Virus record (IMG/VR): IMGVR_UViG_3300032116_000004
Coordinates: 186,001 to 250,000 of that record
DNA length: 64,000 bases
Strand: one strand, 5' to 3'
Below, piece by piece: positions 16 to 40,686 of this stretch. A model generated the notes under the pieces. That model did no database searches. It saw only the letters and a program-made list of their open reading frames with translations, and was not told where the DNA came from. Position 1 is the first letter of the stretch. Every line of letters begins with the position of its first letter. A program made the position numbers and the translations under genes.

Positions 16-852
16 ATGACAGAAAAAAAACAAGAATTATTTGATGCGATAAAAAACACAAAGTTGGTAAGCGAAGCACCTTTCCATCCTGGCTATGAAG
101 ATGCTGCCATGAATCTTACCAACACAGGACTGGACGCCATGGTCAATGATCGAGGTTATCAAACGGCCTATCTCGGCGATGCTATCCGATTCCAAATGCG
201 GCGTGAAGGCAAAAGATTCTGGGCTGGAGACAATGTATCGGAATATGTGAATCCTGCCACCAAAGAAATCCTGATCAATGAGGCCACCGAAGCGTTTGAG
301 TTAGTGCTAGATCGTTTGCTGATCGATAGAGAAACGGATCCCAACTCCAAGGGCACCGCACGTCGTTTGGCCAAGATGTATTTCAATGAGATCATGGCCG
401 GAAGATATGAATCTGCACCCGACTGCACTGCTTTCCCCAACGACTCGGCAGACCGATACGAAGGCATGCTGGTGGTGCGCAGTGAGATCCGGAGCATGTG
501 TAGCCATCACCATCAACCAGTGGTTGGAGTGGCCTATATTGGAATCTTGGCCGCACACAAACTCATCGGTCTCAGCAAATACACTCGCATCGCGCAATGG
601 TGTAGCCGTCGCGGAACTCTACAAGAAGAATTGTGCAACGACATCGCCCGAGAGATCATGAAAGTGACCGAAAGTTCTGATGTAGGCGTATATGTGCAAG
701 CCACGCATGGGTGTTGTGAAAATCGCGGCATCATGGCCCATTCTAGCCTTACCCAGACAACCGTTCTAAACGGTGCATTCCGGACGGACCCGGCTGTGAA
801 AAAAGAGTTCATCGATAATATCAAACTGCAACAGGACTTTGCGCCTAGGTAA
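16..852 (+). CDS. folE: GTP cyclohydrolase I
   Basis: Zn motifs SMCSHH and HGCCENRG, GLSKYTRI, RRGTLQE. Confidence 0.95.
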   Translation: MTEKKQELFDAIKNTKLVSEAPFHPGYEDAAMNLTNTGLDAMVNDRGYQTAYLGDAIRFQMRREGKRFWAGDNVSEYVNPATKEILINEATEAFELVLDRLLIDRETDPNSKGTARRLAKMYFNEIMAGRYESAPDCTAFPNDSADRYEGMLVVRSEIRSMCSHHHQPVVGVAYIGILAAHKLIGLSKYTRIAQWCSRRGTLQEELCNDIAREIMKVTESSDVGVYVQATHGCCENRGIMAHSSLTQTTVLNGAFRTDPAVKKEFIDNIKLQQDFAPR

Positions 853-24470: not shown

Positions 24471-24656
24471 ATGTCTAACTACATTATTTCTTTTATTTTT
24501 TTTGTCATCGGAATCTTTTTCAAGTATCATTCCTCAAATCTGACCATGGGAAGTTTACGAGACATGGGACCCGGATTCTATCCCGACATGATATCTAACT
24601 TACTCATCATCATTGCGATATTGATCGCGGCAAAACAGGCAATATGGAAATCATAA
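24471..24656 (+). CDS. tctB: Short TctB-like membrane protein
   Basis: MGSLRDMGPGFYP loop between two TM helices, directly before tctA. Confidence 0.65.
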   Translation: MSNYIISFIFFVIGIFFKYHSSNLTMGSLRDMGPGFYPDMISNLLIIIAILIAAKQAIWKS

Positions 24657-26122
24657 ACAACTTATCGTTGGGTATTTCCACCGCTTTTACCTGGACCAAC
24701 ATCTTATATTGCTTTGTAGGAACTTTCCTGGGCACACTGGTGGGAGTTCTTCCAGGACTGTCTCCATTGACTGCTGTGGCTATATTATTACCATTAGTTT
24801 ATTCCATCGGTGATCCAGTAACTGCACTAATATTGTTGTCGGGAATTTATTACGGGTCTCAATATGGTGGATCAACCACATCAATACTGCTGAAAATACC
24901 CGGAGAAGTACCGAGTCTAGTGACTGCCATCGACGGTTACGCTATGACCCGCAACGGTCGCGGTGGCGCGGCACTGACCATCGCCGCATTGGCCAGCTTT
25001 TTCGCAGGAACGATCACCACATTGTTGATAGCGATTTTTGCTAAACCATTGGCACAAATCGCATTTGCATTTGGATCAGCAGAATACACATCTCTCATGG
25101 TCATGGGCCTGTTGGCATCTGTGGCACTCACCAATGGGCCGTTCCTTCGTGGAGTAGGCATGGTATTGATCGGAATCTTGCTAGGAACTGTGGGAATAGA
25201 CATCAACACCGGAATAGAAAGATTTACCTTCGGATCTCTGACTCTCATGGATGGTATAAATTTTGCGATCATTGCCGTGGGTGTGTTTGGGTTTGGGGAA
25301 ATGATTTATAATCTCTTCCACGGACAAAAAATTTCAGCACAGATACCAAAATTTAAAGATTTATATCCTACAAAAAAAGAATTAAGAGACAGTGTGGGTC
25401 CTGGAGCCAGAGGAACACTGATTGGTAGCTTGCTGGGGATTTTGCCCGGTGGCGGTGCTTTGCTTTCTTCCTTTGCCAGTTATGTGGTAGAGAAAAAACT
25501 GTCCAAAGATAAAAAAAGTTTTGGTAAAGGAAATATAGCCGGAGTGGCCGGTCCCGAAGCCGCCAACAATGCCGGGGCCCAGATAAGTTTTATCCCAATG
25601 CTGAGTCTGGGGATCCCCACCACTCCCATAATGGCATTGATGATAGCATCATTGATGATCTTTAGCATACAACCTGGTCCAGAAGTGGTAAACTCTAACC
25701 AATCTTTGTTTTGGGGATTGGTGGTATCCATGTGGTTGGGGAACTTAATGCTGGTAATTTTAAATATCCCGTTGGTCGGGGTATGGGTCAGTGTGCTGAG
25801 AATCCCACAGGTTGTGTTATTCAGCATAATATTCTGTATCTGTGTTTTTGGCATTTATGTGATGAATAATAACATCACTGAAGTATGGCTATTACTACCA
25901 TTTGCTGTGCTGGGTTATATTTTCCGTAGATTAGATTGCGAGCCGGCTCCACTGGCCATGGGGTTTGTCATCGGTTTGTTGTTTGAAGAATATTTTAGAA
26001 AAGCCATGATGATATCAAAGGGTGACTGGATGATTTTTTTACAGAGTCCGATCAGTGCTACGTTTTTGTTGATATCATTGGTTGTGATCGCAATTAGTAT
26101 AATATTTAAAATTAAAAAATGA
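24644..26122 (+). CDS. tctA: Tripartite tricarboxylate transporter permease
   Basis: GVLPGLSP, YYGSQYGG, GPEAANNA, LGIP. Confidence 0.95.
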   Translation: MEIINNLSLGISTAFTWTNILYCFVGTFLGTLVGVLPGLSPLTAVAILLPLVYSIGDPVTALILLSGIYYGSQYGGSTTSILLKIPGEVPSLVTAIDGYAMTRNGRGGAALTIAALASFFAGTITTLLIAIFAKPLAQIAFAFGSAEYTSLMVMGLLASVALTNGPFLRGVGMVLIGILLGTVGIDINTGIERFTFGSLTLMDGINFAIIAVGVFGFGEMIYNLFHGQKISAQIPKFKDLYPTKKELRDSVGPGARGTLIGSLLGILPGGGALLSSFASYVVEKKLSKDKKSFGKGNIAGVAGPEAANNAGAQISFIPMLSLGIPTTPIMALMIASLMIFSIQPGPEVVNSNQSLFWGLVVSMWLGNLMLVILNIPLVGVWVSVLRIPQVVLFSIIFCICVFGIYVMNNNITEVWLLLPFAVLGYIFRRLDCEPAPLAMGFVIGLLFEEYFRKAMMISKGDWMIFLQSPISATFLLISLVVIAISIIFKIKK

Positions 26123-30430: not shown

Positions 30431-31615
30431 ATGGAACTCCTCGAACAAAATCCCAAACTTGGTTTTTACACAGTAAACGGTAAGAACTTTTATTCTAAAC
30501 CTCAAGCCCTGCTAGAGGCCACCGCCACTGGTCAGTTTCCCACATGGAACTTCAATCGAGAAGTTTTTAGTCGCATGGACACAACCAAAGAGCCTCAGTT
30601 GAGCTTACGCGAACTGTATCGTATGCGGGCACAGCAACTGAGAGACCGATATGATTACATCCGATTGGAGTTTTCAGGTGGGTCAGACTCTGCTACAGTG
30701 CTCTATAGTTTTATCAACAACAACATACATCTCGACGAGGTGGTATTCCGCTATCCCATGCAAGGAGATAAAAATCTCGGCCCCGATGCCAAGAACATGA
30801 AGGCCGAAAATACCTTGAGCGAGTGGCACTTTGCGGCCAAACCTATCTTGCAAAAGTTGGCTGTCACCCATCCAACTATCAAGATCACCATGCATGATTT
30901 TTCCGACAACATCTTAAAATATCAAGGCGATGAATCATGGGTCAACAATGCCAAAGATTACTTACATCCTGAGCACACGTTCAAACACGACCCCTTGGGT
31001 CTAAAAGGTCACAAAGAGTTGGCCGAAACTGGCAAGCAGATTTGCATCCTCTATGGTGTGGACAAGCCCAAGGTCTGTATCAAAGATGGTCGTTGGTGGT
31101 TGTATTTCTTGGACATACAGGCCAATCACAGCCAGAACCAGCGTGGTCCTTATGACAACATTACCACAGAATATTTCTACTGGCAGGCTGATCTTCCGGA
31201 ACTCATAGTCAAACAAGCCCATACCATACGCAACTGGTTCATGACTCCCACTGCACAGCATCTACAGTTCCTAGTGCGTTGGCCCAATCACAGTGTAGCA
31301 CAACGTGGTGCCTACGAACAGTTGGCCAAGCCCTTGATCTACCCTGACTATGATCCCACCACATGGCAAACTACCAAGTCAACCAACAACTTCTACTCAG
31401 AAATGACTTGGTGGTTCTTCAAGAACTTCAAGGACACACGTTTCTACCAAGTCTGGGAAGCCGGTCTAGCGCACATGGTCAATTCCATTGATCCCAAGTT
31501 CTTTACCTATGAGCAAGGCCGTGCTGTGGGATTTGTTGGCTTCATGGATCAGTTTTACGATCTTGGGCCCACCGACTACGTAAATACCGACATCATCCAA
31601 GGATCTCTCAAATGA
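30431..31615 (+). CDS. PP-loop (adenine nucleotide alpha hydrolase) protein
   Basis: FSGGSDS; paralog of 47439-48575. Confidence 0.65.
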   Translation: MELLEQNPKLGFYTVNGKNFYSKPQALLEATATGQFPTWNFNREVFSRMDTTKEPQLSLRELYRMRAQQLRDRYDYIRLEFSGGSDSATVLYSFINNNIHLDEVVFRYPMQGDKNLGPDAKNMKAENTLSEWHFAAKPILQKLAVTHPTIKITMHDFSDNILKYQGDESWVNNAKDYLHPEHTFKHDPLGLKGHKELAETGKQICILYGVDKPKVCIKDGRWWLYFLDIQANHSQNQRGPYDNITTEYFYWQADLPELIVKQAHTIRNWFMTPTAQHLQFLVRWPNHSVAQRGAYEQLAKPLIYPDYDPTTWQTTKSTNNFYSEMTWWFFKNFKDTRFYQVWEAGLAHMVNSIDPKFFTYEQGRAVGFVGFMDQFYDLGPTDYVNTDIIQGSLK

Positions 31616-32511
31616 AAAAGTTTTTATTATCAATTGCCATTGCATTGGCGGCATTTTCTTCACACGCTCAACAGCAGATTTCTATAGTGTGGCCATTTGG
31701 CATGGGCGACACGCAGGCACAATATAGTCGCAGTCTAGTAGAAGAACTCAACAAGAATCAAAAGGCCTACACTTTCATCTTAGAAAATCGCCCAGGGGCC
31801 GGAGCTACCATTGGTGCCAAACATGTGGCAAGCACACCCAATTCTATTTTGTCCGCGTCCACAGCATTCTTTGTGAGACCTAACTTTTATCCTGAGGAAA
31901 GTCACAGTGTAGCAGACTTCCGGCCCTTGATGACACAGTGTGCCGCGCCCATGGTCATTGTGAGCAAACGATATCGCAATTGGAACGAAGTTGACAAATC
32001 AAAATCCATCAACATTGGCATTTCTGGGCTGGGTGCTACATCGCACTTGATGGCCATGGAGATTGTCAAGCAATATCCCAATGCTCAACCTGTGCCCTAC
32101 AAGGGCACTCGCGAAGCCAGTATAGATGTGATTGCAGGCAATATTGAACTCAGCGTGGCATTCTTGGGCGAGGTAGAAGGATTCCTTGATCGCGGTGATT
32201 TGTATGCTTTGGGTATTTCGGGCAGGAAAAAAGTGCGCGGCATAGCCACACTGGAAAGCCAAGGATTTGCTGGAGTGGGCGAAGTGGTCAACATGCACAG
32301 TCTACAAGTGCCACGATCCATGCCCGACTCACAGTATCAACAACTGCGCGGCATGATCATGCAAGCCGCTCGTGCTGATTCAGTCCAACGGGCCTATGCC
32401 GTGGACTACTGCGAATCCAGCAATCTTGATGCCATAGCCACACAGCGTTGGTTTGATTCACAGGTTGCCCTGTGGAAACGCCTGAGCCAAGGTGTGAAAC
32501 TGGCTAAATAA
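31612..32511 (+). CDS. Bug/TctC periplasmic binding protein
   Basis: Signal peptide, ENRPGAG..IG, VPYKG. Confidence 0.9.
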   Translation: MKKFLLSIAIALAAFSSHAQQQISIVWPFGMGDTQAQYSRSLVEELNKNQKAYTFILENRPGAGATIGAKHVASTPNSILSASTAFFVRPNFYPEESHSVADFRPLMTQCAAPMVIVSKRYRNWNEVDKSKSINIGISGLGATSHLMAMEIVKQYPNAQPVPYKGTREASIDVIAGNIELSVAFLGEVEGFLDRGDLYALGISGRKKVRGIATLESQGFAGVGEVVNMHSLQVPRSMPDSQYQQLRGMIMQAARADSVQRAYAVDYCESSNLDAIATQRWFDSQVALWKRLSQGVKLAK

Positions 32512-32656: not shown

Positions 32657-33616
32657 ATGAGCAAAACTACTAAGATTCGTTGGGTTATAGCCCATGAGCC
32701 TTTGAACCTTTTCCTTCGTGCCGCTGAAGATTTTGAGCGTCGTGTAAACGAACAACAAAGCGAGCACAAGATCGAAGTGGAAATCATGACCTTGACAGAA
32801 TACAGCCAGCGTTACAACGATGGTGTCGTCATCACCAAGCACGATCTCTTGGATCTCATGGAACAGGGCAAAATTGAAATGAGCCAGATGTATACCACAT
32901 GGCTCGCAGAACGCTATGAGCAAGACTTCTTGGCATTCGATCTACCATTCCTGTTCCGGGATCACGAGCATGCTACTCGCGTGTTCGAGAGCGAGATCGG
33001 CGAAGGTCTGTTACAGAAACTCACAGACAAGTCAAACGTGCGTGGCCTTTGCTACACATATTCCGGTGGTTTCCGCCAGATGATCGCTAACAAGAAAGTT
33101 TCTACTCTAGAAGAACTTGCTGGCACACCTGTGCGTTCAAACCGTAATCCTGTGGCACAAGCAACTATCGCTGCCTTGGGCATGAAGCCTGTTGTGGCCG
33201 AAGTTGAAGATCTGCGTCGTGTTGTTGTAGAAGGTCAAGCCGAAGGTGGCGAAACCAACTATCCTCGCATGTATCCTCTGCGCCACAATGAAGTCACCAA
33301 GTCAGTGATCGACACTGGTCACAGCTTGTTCTTGACATCGATGATCATTGGTGATCAGTTCTGGTCATCATTGAGCCCAGAAGTGCAGGCCGTGATCAAG
33401 ACTGCCGCTATCCTGGCCGGACGTGAAGAGCGTGCTGAAACCATCCGTGATGGTGCTCGTGCCGAGAAGCGTCTAGTGGAAGAAGAAGGCGCCAACATCG
33501 TCAAGTGGACACAAGAGCAACGTGAAGCCGCCAAGGTTGCACTGAGTGGTGTTTACGATCAGTTCCGTGATTCATTCACACCTGGTCTCATTGAGGCGAT
33601 TGAAAAGAAGGCTTGA
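32657..33616 (+). CDS. dctP: TRAP transporter substrate-binding protein (DctP-like)
   Basis: FDLPFLFRD, GGFR, EGGET; no evident signal peptide. Confidence 0.8.
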   Translation: MSKTTKIRWVIAHEPLNLFLRAAEDFERRVNEQQSEHKIEVEIMTLTEYSQRYNDGVVITKHDLLDLMEQGKIEMSQMYTTWLAERYEQDFLAFDLPFLFRDHEHATRVFESEIGEGLLQKLTDKSNVRGLCYTYSGGFRQMIANKKVSTLEELAGTPVRSNRNPVAQATIAALGMKPVVAEVEDLRRVVVEGQAEGGETNYPRMYPLRHNEVTKSVIDTGHSLFLTSMIIGDQFWSSLSPEVQAVIKTAAILAGREERAETIRDGARAEKRLVEEEGANIVKWTQEQREAAKVALSGVYDQFRDSFTPGLIEAIEKKA

Positions 33617-33636: not shown

Positions 33637-33664
33637 AAAAACCCTACCAAGTGTAGGGTTTTTT
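33637..33664 (+). terminator. Intrinsic terminator
   Basis: AAAAACCCTAC-CAAGT-GTAGGGTTTTTT. Confidence 0.85.
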
Positions 33665-33687
33665 GTTGTAAAAAGGTAAACCAGAGG

Positions 33688-33716
33688 TTGACCTTATATA
33701 AATAAACCTATACAAT
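33688..33716 (+). promoter_or_regulatory. sigma70-type promoter for leaderless leader ORF
   Basis: TTGACC-17-TACAAT, ATG 7 nt downstream. Confidence 0.8.
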
Positions 33717-33723
33717 ACACACT

Positions 33724-33840
33724 ATGATGAAAACTTTAAGACCTTATTCGATATCATTTATGCAGAAGGAGCCAACAAGTCTCTTGTGGCACCCCACCTG
33801 CCTACGTAATGATGCGATTGGTCCGGAGGGTTCTGAGTAG
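33724..33840 (+). CDS. Putative attenuator leader peptide (38 aa)
   Basis: MMKTLRPYSISFMQKEPTSLLWHPTCLRNDAIGPEGSE*; 33 distinct codons. Confidence 0.65.
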   Translation: MMKTLRPYSISFMQKEPTSLLWHPTCLRNDAIGPEGSE

Positions 33841-33867
33841 AAATCAGATTGTAAAAATTATTCTACA

Positions 33868-33906
33868 CAGGACCCCGGAACTAAAAACTCCGGGGTTTCT
33901 GTTTTA
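33868..33906 (+). terminator. Attenuator-type intrinsic terminator
   Basis: CAGGACCCCGGA / TCCGGGGTTTCTG followed by TTTTAT. Confidence 0.8.
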
Positions 33907-33925: not shown

Positions 33926-34105
33926 TTGACAGAAAAAATAGATTACAGTAAAATTGCCGATCGTGTTGTCGAACAAGCATTTGAGCATAGTGGGTTTGTC
34001 CTAGATGAACATGATATGCAACGATTGCTCCAAGGCAAGATAGATCGGGCTCGAAAAGAAATCGATGCTAGGGCTACATGTCCAGTCTGGCACACTGATC
34101 GATAA
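33926..34105 (+). CDS. Small hypothetical protein (59 aa)
   Basis: AAAGGA SD, TTG start; overlaps a TTGACA-17-TAAAAT match. Confidence 0.45.
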   Translation: MTEKIDYSKIADRVVEQAFEHSGFVLDEHDMQRLLQGKIDRARKEIDARATCPVWHTDR

Positions 34106-34106
34106 T

Positions 34107-34311
34107 CGAGCAAAGTGTAGTGGGAAACGAGGTCCCAGAGCGCACTCTAAACATGCTCTAAACGGGCGGGGTCCTGGATTGAAATCTCCGGCGGTAACGG
34201 AGAAAGTAAGATAGGCAAGCGGAGGATGTCTCCGCTTTGGCTCTGGCAACAGAGCCCATATTCAAACACATGACCGAGCAGTCAAGTCAATGAGTCGTGT
34301 GTTTGAATATG
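34107..34311 (+). ncRNA. Unassigned structured RNA
   Basis: Hairpins TCTCCG/CGGAGA, AAGCGGAG/CTCCGCTT, GGCTCTG-GCAA-CAGAGCC, 14-bp stem 34257-34270/34298-34311. Confidence 0.45.
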
Positions 34312-34314
34312 CAT

Positions 34315-34404
34315 GGGGGTTGTTCTCTACGGCGGACTGTAAATCCGTTGCCTTTAATATGTAGAGTGGCCGGCGATTAGGTTCGATTCCTTCAGTCCCC
34401 ACCA
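34315..34404 (+). tRNA. Atypical tRNA-Tyr(GTA)-like gene lacking a canonical D-arm
   Basis: CTGTAAA anticodon arm, TTCGATT loop, CCA. Confidence 0.6.
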
Positions 34405-34409
34405 AACAT

Positions 34410-34484
34410 GGTCTCATAGTATAATGGTTAGTATAGCGGCTTGTCACGCCGTTGATAGGAGTTCGATTCTCCTTGGGACCGCCA
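34410..34484 (+). tRNA. tRNA-Asp(GTC)
   Basis: Cloverleaf, CCA. Confidence 0.92.
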
Positions 34485-34490
34485 AACAAT

Positions 34491-34565
34491 TCCAAGGTAG
34501 CACAGCGGTAGTGCAGAAGACTGTTACTCTTTTGGTCGCAGGTTCGATCCCTGCCCTTGTAGCCA
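34491..34565 (+). tRNA. tRNA-Asn(GTT)
   Basis: Cloverleaf, one acceptor mismatch, CCA. Confidence 0.88.
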
Positions 34566-34571
34566 TGATCT

Positions 34572-34661
34572 CCCCCGCTAGCTCATGGAGAGCAGGTCGG
34601 CTTATAACCGATTAATCTAGATAAGGTCCAGGATGAGGTTCGATTCCTCAGCGGGGGACCA
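34572..34661 (+). tRNA. tRNA with TAT anticodon and long variable region
   Basis: CTTATAA loop, short D-loop, CCA. Confidence 0.8.
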
Positions 34662-34670
34662 AAAAAATAT

Positions 34671-34747
34671 TACGGCGTAGTTCCAACTGGCAGAACGACA
34701 GTCTCCAAAACTGTATGATGGGGGTTCGAATCCCTCCGCCGTAGCCA
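34671..34747 (+). tRNA. tRNA-Trp(CCA)
   Basis: Cloverleaf, CCA. Confidence 0.9.
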
Positions 34748-34754
34748 ACACAAT

Positions 34755-34832
34755 GTGAAGGTGGCAGAGAGGTCCAATGCAAGAGTCTGCAAAACTCTAA
34801 AACCGTCGGTTCGAATCCGACCCTTCACTCCA
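34755..34832 (+). tRNA. tRNA-Cys(GCA)
   Basis: Cloverleaf, U73, CCA. Confidence 0.92.
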
Positions 34833-35210
34833 TTAGAATTCTAGTCGTAGGCCTATGCTGAGATTGTTTATAACCAAAGCGGATTCCATACCAGTGACCA
34901 CTTTGAGATACAGAGTGCGGTTACGGCCTTGGAAATAATCTGCCGCAAAATAGTTGGCTACCATCCAAGTCACGAAATGCAGATCCACTGCTTGCGTGGT
35001 AGGATGCCGGCCCAACAACGGATTACGTTCATAGTAGCCTTCAGCATATCTGCGAGTCATGTTGCGTGTGGTCGCCCAATCACCCAGAATGGCCGCGTTG
35101 GATGCCAAGAACCAATTTTGTTGCTCTGTGGTCCAGTTAGACCAGGCCCAGCTAGCACTGGGCAACCATAGCAGGATGGCCAAGAGTTTTTTCACAACAA
35201 TATTTAACAA
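34833..35210 (-). CDS. Secreted/membrane hypothetical protein within the tRNA array
   Basis: Signal peptide KKLLAILLWLPSASWA, C-terminal Phe. Confidence 0.65.
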   Translation of the reverse strand: MLNIVVKKLLAILLWLPSASWAWSNWTTEQQNWFLASNAAILGDWATTRNMTRRYAEGYYERNPLLGRHPTTQAVDLHFVTWMVANYFAADYFQGRNRTLYLKVVTGMESALVINNLSIGLRLEF

Positions 35211-35705: not shown

Positions 35706-36173
35706 TCAAGTGGGTGTTACTTGCCCGGTAACAGCATCCACATGCACAGGTCGGCGTGTGACAAATGCGAAATCATAGAAAGGATTGAAGCGATAGTCTA
35801 CTGTTTTGCGCAGTCTGCAGAATGTCCAGGTGTCGGTGATTCCGGCCTTGGCCATGGCCTGCTGTGCTTGGGCGCAACTCAGTTTGGGTGGATACACAAA
35901 CGCCGTGCATTCGGCCACTCGCGAATCATCAATCACAGGTGAGGTGGCATGTCCTGATGTATCAATGGTTATGGCATAGGGTTTTTGATCTTGAGAACCT
36001 TGCCAAACAGTATACATGGTTCCGCCTGCATTGGCTTCGGCGAGATAAAATTGCGATGCGCTCTGATAGAGATCCATGAGACTCTTGCCGCCCCATATTT
36101 GCTGATCGTATGTCAAGGGCGATAACACCCCCAGTCGTCTGAGATGTTTCTTTACAGCGGCTATGATTTTCAT
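35706..36173 (-). CDS. Hypothetical protein
   Basis: 155-aa ORF with SD, inserted in the array. Confidence 0.65.
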   Translation of the reverse strand: MKIIAAVKKHLRRLGVLSPLTYDQQIWGGKSLMDLYQSASQFYLAEANAGGTMYTVWQGSQDQKPYAITIDTSGHATSPVIDDSRVAECTAFVYPPKLSCAQAQQAMAKAGITDTWTFCRLRKTVDYRFNPFYDFAFVTRRPVHVDAVTGQVTPT

Positions 36174-36465: not shown

Positions 36466-37659
36466 TCACAAAGGATGTCTTAATAGATCTTTTAAACAAC
36501 GATTTGATTCATCTAGCGTGAGTCTTTTTAATTTGTCATGAAATCGCTGTTTGGCAAAATCCAGGTTAGCATCAAACCTTTGTTGATTTTGATTCCAGAG
36601 TCTGACAGTATCAACAGGATTTGTGAGCAAGTGCTTGTTATTACTCACGGCGGTATACAATCTATCTATAGGGTTATCTATGATGTCATACGAATGATCA
36701 ATGATGTCGTCAAACATATCAAATCCAAAACTACGATAAAGATCTACGGTTCCTCGACTAGATATCATGATAGGAAAATTCCGAGCATATATCGTGTGGA
36801 TAAATTTTTCATCGATGTTAATAGTTGGCTCGCAGAAAAGTCTATTTGAAACCAATTCTACAAAACTTGTTCTATACAAAGGACGCAGATTGTTTCCAAA
36901 ATTGTTCACGTTATCAAAGTCTAGCACTGTGTCAGATCCAGCCTCTGTCAAATAGATGTCGTTGCCATTATCATCACCAAATCGTAAATTATCAGGATTT
37001 GATATCATCTTGTCAAACCCTTGGCACATGATCTGTTTTACATGATCATTGTGATCATGATATTGCCAAGGGTTGTGATCAAGGAAATCCCTGCTAGGCA
37101 ATTTATCTAATTGTTTGTATAAATGACCAGTGCTGATATGGCAGCAATTATCTAGATCTAATCCATACAAAAGGCTACAGAGAGCCAATCGATGAGTGCG
37201 CATTTGTCTATTCAGTGCGATGCCTATTTTTTTAGATTGTTGATTCTTGTCGTTGATTGGGGATAATTTTGCATATAGATCATCTTCAGGAACGGTAAAC
37301 CATTTGCCTACTCTTACATTGGGCAGATTGAAATATCCATCATGATAATGATTACCTTGTAACATAAAGACAATGGTTTTTTCAGGAGATGCGAGCGCCA
37401 GGTTCCTGATGTCTTGGAAAATAGTGGGTTCTTGGCCTTCAGTCCAATAATCATACTCCTGTGGGAAATTGCCGTAATGAGGACTGTCTTCCAAAATCAA
37501 AAACAACAGGTTTTCGTTGAGATCAAGGTTTAACCATTGATTCCAAGATGTTATATGCGTAAAAACACTGTCGTGCGGCACAGAAATGGCATCAGTCACT
37601 GTGTCAAATAATTTTCGTGCCATGGGCAATCTGTGTGGCACATGAGTAAAATATTTCAT
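36466..37659 (-). CDS. 'TEK-motif' putative glycosyltransferase
   Basis: FVELVS..INIDEKF..NFP..GFDMFDDIIDHSYD; ATG 37659 chosen to avoid tRNA overlap. Confidence 0.6.
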   Translation of the reverse strand: MKYFTHVPHRLPMARKLFDTVTDAISVPHDSVFTHITSWNQWLNLDLNENLLFLILEDSPHYGNFPQEYDYWTEGQEPTIFQDIRNLALASPEKTIVFMLQGNHYHDGYFNLPNVRVGKWFTVPEDDLYAKLSPINDKNQQSKKIGIALNRQMRTHRLALCSLLYGLDLDNCCHISTGHLYKQLDKLPSRDFLDHNPWQYHDHNDHVKQIMCQGFDKMISNPDNLRFGDDNGNDIYLTEAGSDTVLDFDNVNNFGNNLRPLYRTSFVELVSNRLFCEPTINIDEKFIHTIYARNFPIMISSRGTVDLYRSFGFDMFDDIIDHSYDIIDNPIDRLYTAVSNNKHLLTNPVDTVRLWNQNQQRFDANLDFAKQRFHDKLKRLTLDESNRCLKDLLRHPL

Positions 37660-37681
37660 ATACAAATTTATGTAAACCCAT

Positions 37682-37759
37682 GCCCCCTTGGACAAATAGG
37701 TAAAGTCGTCTCTCTCAAAAGGAGAAGTTCTCTCGGTTCGAATCCGAGAGGGGGTACCA
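37682..37759 (+). tRNA. tRNA-Leu(CAA), short variable region
   Basis: CTCAAAA loop, A73, CCA. Confidence 0.85.
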
Positions 37760-37765
37760 AACAAT

Positions 37766-39169: not shown

Positions 39170-39199
39170 TTGACAGTCACTAAATATTTTTGTTATAAT
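39170..39199 (+). promoter_or_regulatory. sigma70-type promoter
   Basis: TTGACA-18-TATAAT with TG. Confidence 0.75.
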
Positions 39200-39382: not shown

Positions 39383-39620
39383 TGTGATCATGGCCAACAT
39401 GGTTTTTGCTGTTGCTGTGATGTGGCTACTGATTGAAGATTTTCGCACAGAAATGCGGAATTTGTCGGCTAAGTAATTTTACTATGCAGGAGTATGCACC
39501 CAAGGGCTCTTGAAAAATCTCTTGGAATTGTTGATGTGGTGAGAGGCCACAGGTCACGCGAGGACCGTACATGTCCTGATAGTCTCGTGAAAGAATTGTT
39601 GTATGAAGCAAAGAGAAAAG

Positions 39621-39855
39621 TGTTCAAGACATGGGTTCGAATCCCATCACCTCCACCTAAGTGTATAAGGTATATTTAGGTGGGGGTGCTCCGGTAATCG
39701 ATTGAGCAAAGAGTAAATGAGTGGACAACACGATAGGCGATGATCGTTAATCAAGCAAACTTTATAACTGCAAACGATGAGTTATACGCTCTAGCCGCCT
39801 GATAGGCACTAGATGAGGATTTTCCGGTTGTGCCTTATAACCCAAACAACCGGTT
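39621..39855 (+). ncRNA. ssrA: Circularly permuted (two-piece) tmRNA
   Basis: T-arm plus CACCTCC-ACC (39631-39657) precede the 5' strand GGGGGTG (39682-39688) with G3:U70; tag ANDELYALAA* at 39770-39802 after ATAACT; outer ends approximate. Confidence 0.9.
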
Positions 39856-39882
39856 GACTCTTTTTTATTTTCCTGTTATAAT
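39854..39882 (+). promoter_or_regulatory. sigma70-type promoter
   Basis: TTGACT-17-TATAAT with TG. Confidence 0.85.
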
Positions 39883-39889
39883 TAACAAT

Positions 39890-39901
39890 CGTTCTTTAAC
39901 A
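39890..39901 (+). promoter_or_regulatory. rrn-type boxA antitermination site
   Basis: CGTTCTTTAACA versus rrn TGCTCTTTAACA, just after the start site. Confidence 0.65.
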
Positions 39902-40602: not shown

Positions 40603-40608
40603 AATAAA

Positions 40609-40686
40609 GCGGGTAGATCGTGGCAAGGGGCGCCCAGCAGTCTTCCAAACTGATCATGCGGAGTTCGACTCTCCCTACCCGCTCCA
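40609..40686 (+). tRNA. tRNA-Gly(TCC)
   Basis: CTTCCAA loop, U73, CCA; unusual D-arm. Confidence 0.82.

Follow-up and report, generated by a model that had tools for sequence, protein, structure and literature searches.

A short translated leader preceding the tRNA genes of a giant phage and of about a hundred relatives carries a terminator/antiterminator switch and nearly all 20 amino acids, probably to sense the supply of charged tRNAs

The DNA analyzed here (the window, 64,000 nucleotides) comes from an uncultivated ~315-kb phage and is identical to IMG/VR contigs of 105 kb and 315 kb. Upstream of its tRNA genes, and on the same (+) strand, a hairpin terminator with flanking A and T runs (33637-33668) closes a transporter-like operon and marks the 5′ boundary of the unit described below. 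This terminator is conserved in three related IMG/VR loci, referred to as L007, L008 and L010. It is followed by a sigma-70-type promoter, TTGACC-17-TACAAT (33688-33716), which is a 10/12 match and is conserved in L007, L008, L010 and a fourth related locus, L002. An ATG found 7 nt after the -10 element opens an ORF without a 5′ untranslated region (33724-33840), the 38 sense codons of which read MMKTLRPYSISFMQKEPTSLLWHPTCLRNDAIGPEGSE and end at a TAG stop codon (33838-33840). The ORF uses 33 distinct codons and encodes 19 of the 20 amino acids, Val being absent; only ATG, GAG and GGT are repeated, and four different codons each are found for Pro, Leu and Ser. Downstream lies an intrinsic terminator (33868-33905), consisting of the 5′ arm CAGGACCCCGGA (33868-33879), the loop ACTAAAAAC (33880-33888), the 3′ arm TCCGGGGTTTCTG (33889-33901) and TTTT. 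This hairpin, which occurs once in the window, was missed by a consensus terminator scan only because its loop is 9 nt, and its T tract is interrupted (TTTCTGTTTT).

The first gene downstream of the terminator is a conserved ORF of 59 amino acids and unknown function (33926-34105), with a TTG start and an AAGGA ribosome-binding site. Searches of Pfam and PHROGs gave nothing significant for either this ORF or the leader peptide, an RsiG-like hit at E = 0.006 being below the cut-off. A divergent tRNA-Tyr(GTA)-like gene follows (34313-34403) and is probably the first gene of the array; it gave only a weak Rfam tRNA-clan hit, but aligns to the ARAGORN-called tRNA-Tyr genes of L010 and L008, with conserved anticodon loop, T arm and acceptor end. 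The proximal tRNA cluster (Asp, Asn, Ile-TAT, Trp and Cys; 34410-34832) is the first stretch of an array that extends to about 44.5 kb, in which ARAGORN detects 25 tRNAs and a tmRNA, all on the + strand, and whose set of 20 specificities would be completed by the tRNA-Tyr-like gene. However, the array is interrupted by three minus-strand ORFs and contains strong promoter-like sites at 39170 and 39854, and the element described here may therefore govern mainly the proximal cluster (Tyr-like, Asp, Asn, Ile, Trp and Cys).

The initial annotation, made from the sequence alone, described this layout as a codon-sampling attenuator and a candidate general sensor of tRNA depletion, and every one of its sequence statements was confirmed. 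Uniform sampling of codons predicts 28.45 distinct codons in a leader of this length, P(≥33) being 0.02, and only 2 of 1430 stop-free 38-codon blocks in the window reach 33. However, 16 of 221 small ORFs in the window also reach 19 amino acids, and the single sequence is therefore suggestive rather than decisive. The significance comes from the relatives. A search with the upstream gene of 319 amino acids gave 36 loci, 14 of which carry the same arrangement of promoter, small ORF, hairpin and SD-led small gene. Of 115 distinct hairpins with enough upstream sequence, 112 have an ATG ORF of at least 20 codons ending 8-70 nt upstream, and about 100 of these belong to one family, from which 91 members were retained for analysis after de-replication at 93% identity. 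No relatives were found among cultured phages (INPHARED), where DNA searches with the window leader and with a leader of the main subfamily, and a protein search with an ORF of 794 amino acids, found only tRNA hits or nothing. A search for analogous leaders in another jumbo phage, Xanthomonas phage Xoo-sp13, gave only noise, because its tRNAs are scattered among small ORFs. The host also remains uncertain, since a scan of genome contigs gave only 6 hits, all in MAGs.

Comparison of the 91 members indicates that the leader ORF is translated. The reading frame contains no stop codon in 91 of 91 members, whereas the other two frames carry 263 and 332 stops and are each open in only 4 of 91. In 46 members the ATG lies 6-10 nt after the -10 element (48 within 12 nt, counted as leaderless), 13 members have a canonical SD, and 30 have a purine-rich AAGAGAAA-type stretch. 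A strict TTGACN-16..18-TANNWT motif occurs within 130 nt upstream of the leader ATG in 85 of 91 members, and the stop codon, which is TAA or TAG in 89 of 91, lies 19-36 nt (median 28) before the terminator hairpin. Nevertheless, the constraint is on the RNA. Entropies are flat over the three codon positions, at 1.40, 1.31 and 1.47, and conserved codons (TGG, GAT, CGC/CGT, ACA, CCA, GAG and GGC) are fixed at the third position too. In the main subfamily these codons are stem partners, UUGGU, which includes the Trp codon, pairing with ACCAG, and GCGAUU with GAUCGC. In the window the structured 5′ domain inside the ORF (33748-33818) is a long irregular hairpin, the apex of which is a smaller hairpin (33771-33790) containing the nearly invariant TGG codon; this apical hairpin is present in the MFE, although the pausing role suggested for it in the initial annotation remains a hypothesis. 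The MFE of the window transcript is -57.6 kcal/mol (z = -4.2), and the 5′ domains of the family have a mean z of -2.5, i.e. they are more structured than shuffled sequence. The apparent conservation of the peptide is thus a by-product of RNA structure, which is the pattern expected of an attenuator leader and not of a small protein.

Both helices of the proposed switch covary. For the terminator, RNAalifold on 91 sequences gives 10 pairs, with compensatory changes at 3-4 of them (CG/UA/UG, AU/GC and GC/AU). When the window RNA is truncated before the terminator 3′ arm, the MFE instead pairs GGGUUCUG (33828-33835) with CAGGACCC (33868-33875), and continues with GUAGAA (33837-33842) paired to UUCUAC (33861-33866). 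The antiterminator 5′ arm (33828-33842), formed by helix H1 GGGTTCTG and GTAGAA, thus includes the stop codon, whereas its 3′ arm (33861-33875), formed by TTCTAC and CAGGACCC, overlaps the terminator 5′ arm. The initial annotation had placed the competing segment at 33822-33835; this segment is real, but the conserved antiterminator is GGGTTCTG plus GTAGAA, and the TCCGG part is specific to this window. In the family, a motif R-GGG-T-Y-Y found inside the last 5-12 codons pairs with R-R-A-CCC-Y, which corresponds to the flank plus the first four bases of the terminator 5′ arm. H1 is paired in 91-100% of the 91 sequences at each position, and in 95% of cells overall, with covariation at three pairs (AT 39, GC 32 and GT 15 at one position; CG 62, TA 17 and TG 6 at another; CG 65 and TA 16 at a third). 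None of 2000 permutations reaches the observed pairing, sliding the partner by one base drops pairing from 95% to 57-65%, and 39 different arm combinations are found. Many subfamilies extend the helix with their own complementary bases (TTCT/AGAA, TCTTA/TAAGA, TTTTG/CAAAA, TTCAG/CTGAG and TTTGTG/CACAAG). Note that RNAalifold on MAFFT alignments found only the terminator on the whole leader and nothing on the antiterminator region, as MAFFT had put the GGG anchor out of register, and that the helix was recovered once the alignment was anchored. The whole antiterminator hairpin averages 54 nt and -20.6 kcal/mol (z = -5.5), against -14.9 kcal/mol for the terminator, and its 5′ arm contains the stop codon in about 75 of 91 members.

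An equilibrium stall map, which provides no kinetic information, shows how ribosome position could act on these structures. In the window the antiterminator is favored or competitive for A-site codons 1-31 and excluded for codons 32-39, and with a ribosome at the stop codon P(antiterminator) is 0 in all 91 members. Without any ribosome, the window leader prefers the terminator (0.84), whereas in 70 of 91 relatives the naked leader prefers the antiterminator. The behavior of the window comes from pairing of early codons (33729-33743) with 33820-33833 in the full-length MFE (GACC:GGUC and neighboring pairs), which constitutes a candidate anti-antiterminator. One compensatory change, GACC:GGTC in the window against GATC:GATC in L007, was observed for this pairing, but in such a small sample it is a hint only.

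All 66 members with at least 1.5 kb of downstream sequence have tRNA genes downstream on the same strand, at a median distance of 415 nt (57 within 1 kb) and with a median of 17 tRNAs within 6 kb. In contrast, nine look-alike hairpins that lack the family leader ORF, most of them following a larger gene, have no tRNAs downstream. An SD-led homolog (42-59 amino acids) of the first downstream gene is present in 52 of 82 relatives, and in others a tRNA follows directly, within 91-260 nt. The initial annotation had pointed out that an 11/12 promoter match (33926-33954) could bypass the terminator. This sequence lies on the TTG start and first codons of the conserved 59-amino-acid gene and is kept only in the closest relatives, being identical in L002 and L007, reading TTGAAA in L008, and absent from L010 and from most relatives, which start with ATG. 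However, it may still fire in this clade and thereby bypass the switch.

The most striking result concerns the amino acid content of the leaders. Of the 91 leaders (mean 43 codons), 47 encode all 20 amino acids and 23 more encode 19, the mean being 19.08. Composition-matched sampling predicts 2.2 complete leaders when Met is forced, or 4.5 when Met and Trp are forced, with means of 17.2-17.4, and the other two frames of the same RNAs give means of 16.3 and 16.5 with 0 and 1 complete sets. RNA structure and base composition therefore do not explain the signal. Among leaders of 38-53 codons, 47 of 74 are complete, whereas leaders of 30-37 codons never are (0 of 17), and variants of 21-22 codons also exist. 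Rare residues occur about once each (Cys 0.97, Trp 1.04, His 1.22 and Tyr 1.18). An internal Met, needed to probe elongator tRNA-Met, is present in 92% of leaders against 55% expected, and the two Ser boxes are present in 97% and 93%, the latter being Ser-AGY (77% expected). Coverage of 24 decoding classes averages 21.9 against 19.2 expected. The property is spread over 21 of 45 clusters at 50% peptide identity, and the single Cys occupies 28 different alignment columns, Val 17, Tyr 16 and His 14, indicating that presence is maintained and not position. Interestingly, L010, a close relative of the window, has all 20 amino acids in 38 codons, and the window leader has Pro where L010 has Val, although the phage carries tRNA-Val. 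What is selected is thus one of each amino acid, including an internal Met and both Ser boxes, and not the maximal codon diversity suggested by the initial annotation: the distinct-codon ratio of the translated frame (0.762) hardly differs from that of frame +2 (0.760), and Ile-ATA and Arg-AGR are not enriched, so that not every tRNA species is sampled. Moreover, only 4 of 91 leaders hold all 20 amino acids within a strict zone at least 15 nt upstream of the antiterminator arm, where the enrichment is modest (17.6 against 17.1 ± 0.11 for permuted codon order), although diversity is still front-loaded.

With these corrections, the comparative data support the interpretation of the initial annotation, and we consider with reasonable, but not complete, confidence that the unit is a ribosome-mediated transcription attenuator that gates host RNA polymerase transcription from an early-type promoter into the phage tRNA genes. 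In this model the roughly 185-nt leader is translated from its 5′ end. A ribosome that keeps pace and runs to the stop codon melts or covers the antiterminator, so that the terminator forms and transcription ends at about 33905, whereas if the ribosome is held up at an earlier codon the antiterminator forms first, and polymerase reads through into the small downstream gene and the tRNA array. As the leaders are selected to contain every amino acid about once, a shortage of almost any aminoacyl-tRNA should delay the ribosome and induce the array, and the element would act as a homeostatic sensor of tRNA supply. In the absence of experimental evidence, the direction of the switch, its dependence on stalling and the natural signal are inferred, candidate signals being host tRNA decay, tRNA-cleaving defenses, a codon/tRNA mismatch or starvation. 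In its strongest form, which we regard as only somewhat more likely than not, this would be a universal sensor of aminoacyl-tRNA supply, in which a near-minimal complete set of all 20 amino acids has evolved so that depletion of any one charged tRNA triggers anti-termination and induces a complete phage tRNA set and a tmRNA. It would then be the first attenuator that controls tRNA genes and the first tuned to all amino acids at once; no description of such an element was found in Rfam or in the literature searched. Why phages carry large tRNA sets, and when they use them, is an old question, and this element suggests that at least one widespread lineage of giant phages expresses its tRNAs on demand, using the ribosome itself as the meter. 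The element would also be a compact, portable sensor of translation elongation stress, and its presence could serve as a marker telling regulated tRNA arrays from constitutive ones in metagenomes.

Among the alternatives, the one that survives best, although we consider it unlikely, is that of a translation-coupled terminator reporting only whether ribosomes are loading at all, as a measure of global translation capacity or as a timing device, with an incidental amino acid content. Indeed, the switch geometry needs only a ribosome arriving at the stop, leaders of 21-37 codons are not complete sets, and the strict sensing zone rarely holds all 20 amino acids. However, complete leaders are 10-20 times more frequent than expected, and only in the translated frame, internal Met and both Ser boxes are enriched, and rare residues move between positions while their presence is kept, none of which is needed for a simple loading sensor. 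Still less likely is a free-standing small RNA of about 185 nt acting in trans, or a dual-function RNA. The strong nucleotide-level conservation and structure, the presence of a dedicated promoter and terminator, and the precedent of attenuator-derived sRNAs (rnTrpL, PMC6614838) are in favor of this possibility, which is not exclusive of the attenuator reading, but it does not explain the open frame, the conserved start and stop, the frame-specific amino acid completeness or the covarying antiterminator that overlaps the terminator, and no Rfam family matches the leader in the window or in 7 other loci. An attenuator specific for one amino acid, for example Trp through the single TGG present in 96 of 98 leaders at one alignment column, or a reverse, pyrBI-like logic in which translation promotes read-through, is also improbable, since there is never a run of identical codons, the TGG lies in a conserved stem, and a ribosome terminating 19-36 nt before the terminator hairpin cannot cover the terminator but does cover the antiterminator. 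Finally, a functional small protein followed by an ordinary terminator is very unlikely despite the conserved ORF and aligned motifs (W, NDRTPE), as third codon positions are as conserved as the others, the motifs coincide with RNA stems, the peptides are otherwise very divergent (45 clusters at 50% identity), and no Pfam or PHROG hits were found.

The closest known systems are the leader-peptide attenuators of enterobacterial amino acid operons (trp, his, leu, thr, pheA and ilv) and of pheST, which similarly combine a promoter-proximal short ORF, an intrinsic terminator and a mutually exclusive antiterminator whose formation depends on where the ribosome sits, with a comparable distance from stop codon to terminator; in this window the possible anti-antiterminator would be a further, 1:2-like, similarity. 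Differently from these systems, the phage leader has no run of codons for one amino acid but about one of each of the 20, about half of the leaders have no 5′ untranslated region, the stop codon lies inside the antiterminator stem, and the regulated genes are tRNAs, plus a tiny ORF, in a phage rather than biosynthetic or synthetase genes. T-box riboswitches also sense the state of the tRNA pool and use a terminator/antiterminator choice to control translation-related genes, but they bind one specific uncharged tRNA directly and have no ORF, whereas here a translated ORF is the conserved sensor and no T-box or other Rfam (Rfam 15) model matches the leader in the window or in 7 other loci at permissive E-values. 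In the pyrBI and pyrE attenuators read-through likewise depends on the gap between polymerase and the ribosome translating a leader of about 44 codons, but there the ribosome physically blocks the terminator, so that translation promotes read-through, and the signal is UTP-dependent polymerase pausing. Phage tRNA arrays acting as a counter to tRNA-cleaving systems (PMC10264068; PARIS, PMC11464382) give a rationale for deploying phage tRNAs when host tRNAs are lost; however, PMC10264068 mentions no leader, promoter, terminator or attenuation, no such control surfaced for the other papers in the searches made, and the link to defense is here an inference. Stringent (ppGpp/DksA) control of cellular tRNA and rRNA promoters also links tRNA gene transcription to the supply of charged tRNA, but it acts at initiation and lowers tRNA synthesis on starvation, whereas the phage element is predicted to raise it by anti-termination.

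Upstream of the leader, a full-length TctA tripartite tricarboxylate transporter gene (Pfam E = 8.7e-143) is found in a phage genome, at window positions 24644-26122, and the genes at 31612-32511 and 32657-33616, which lie just upstream of the leader, look like those of periplasmic solute-binding proteins. On the other side of the leader, a short stretch at 34109-34169, located between the 59-aa gene and the first tRNA, is conserved in the related loci L010 and L024 with 82-87% identity.

A divergent tRNA-Tyr(GTA)-like gene that is missed by ARAGORN was found at positions 34313-34403. It has an odd D arm and a long variable region; its anticodon loop, T arm and acceptor end align with the tRNA-Tyr genes of L010 and of L008 (another related locus), and, if this gene is functional, the tRNA set of the phage would cover all 20 amino acids. 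A weak Rfam tRNA-Sec-like hit (32.5 bits, below threshold) at 40608-40683, right after a tRNA-Met, may be another unusual tRNA. Interestingly, a phage-encoded tmRNA (tag ANDELYALAA) also sits inside the array at 39563-39893, and its best Rfam model is the betaproteobacterial type, which hints at the host group. Note also that the + strand tRNA array is interrupted by three minus-strand ORFs with no Pfam family (34833-35210, 35706-36173 and 36466-37764), and that two strong promoter-like sites (12/12 and 11/12) lie inside it on the + strand (39170-39199 and 39854-39882). The array is therefore unlikely to be a single transcription unit.

We also found that a near-identical hairpin, loop included, follows the C-terminus of a larger protein (MYQVDG...FKLTT) in other phage contigs (loci L037, L045, L047, L107, L108, L129, L136 and L152), where there is no promoter or leader, and where no tRNAs lie downstream in the members examined (L037, L045, L107 and L108). 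The hairpin itself is thus a reusable terminator module. In addition, the variant units of loci L070, L125 and L133 have leaders of only 21-22 codons, and a tRNA-Gly starts 36-57 nt after the hairpin; these units show that amino-acid completeness is not universal in the wider family. Among 185,579 species genomes, the only hits were six contigs of MAGs, four of which (L157, L159, L160 and L162) carry a family leader (two Haliscomenobacter, one Flavobacteriales and one Polynucleobacter); they are probably phage contigs binned with bacteria.
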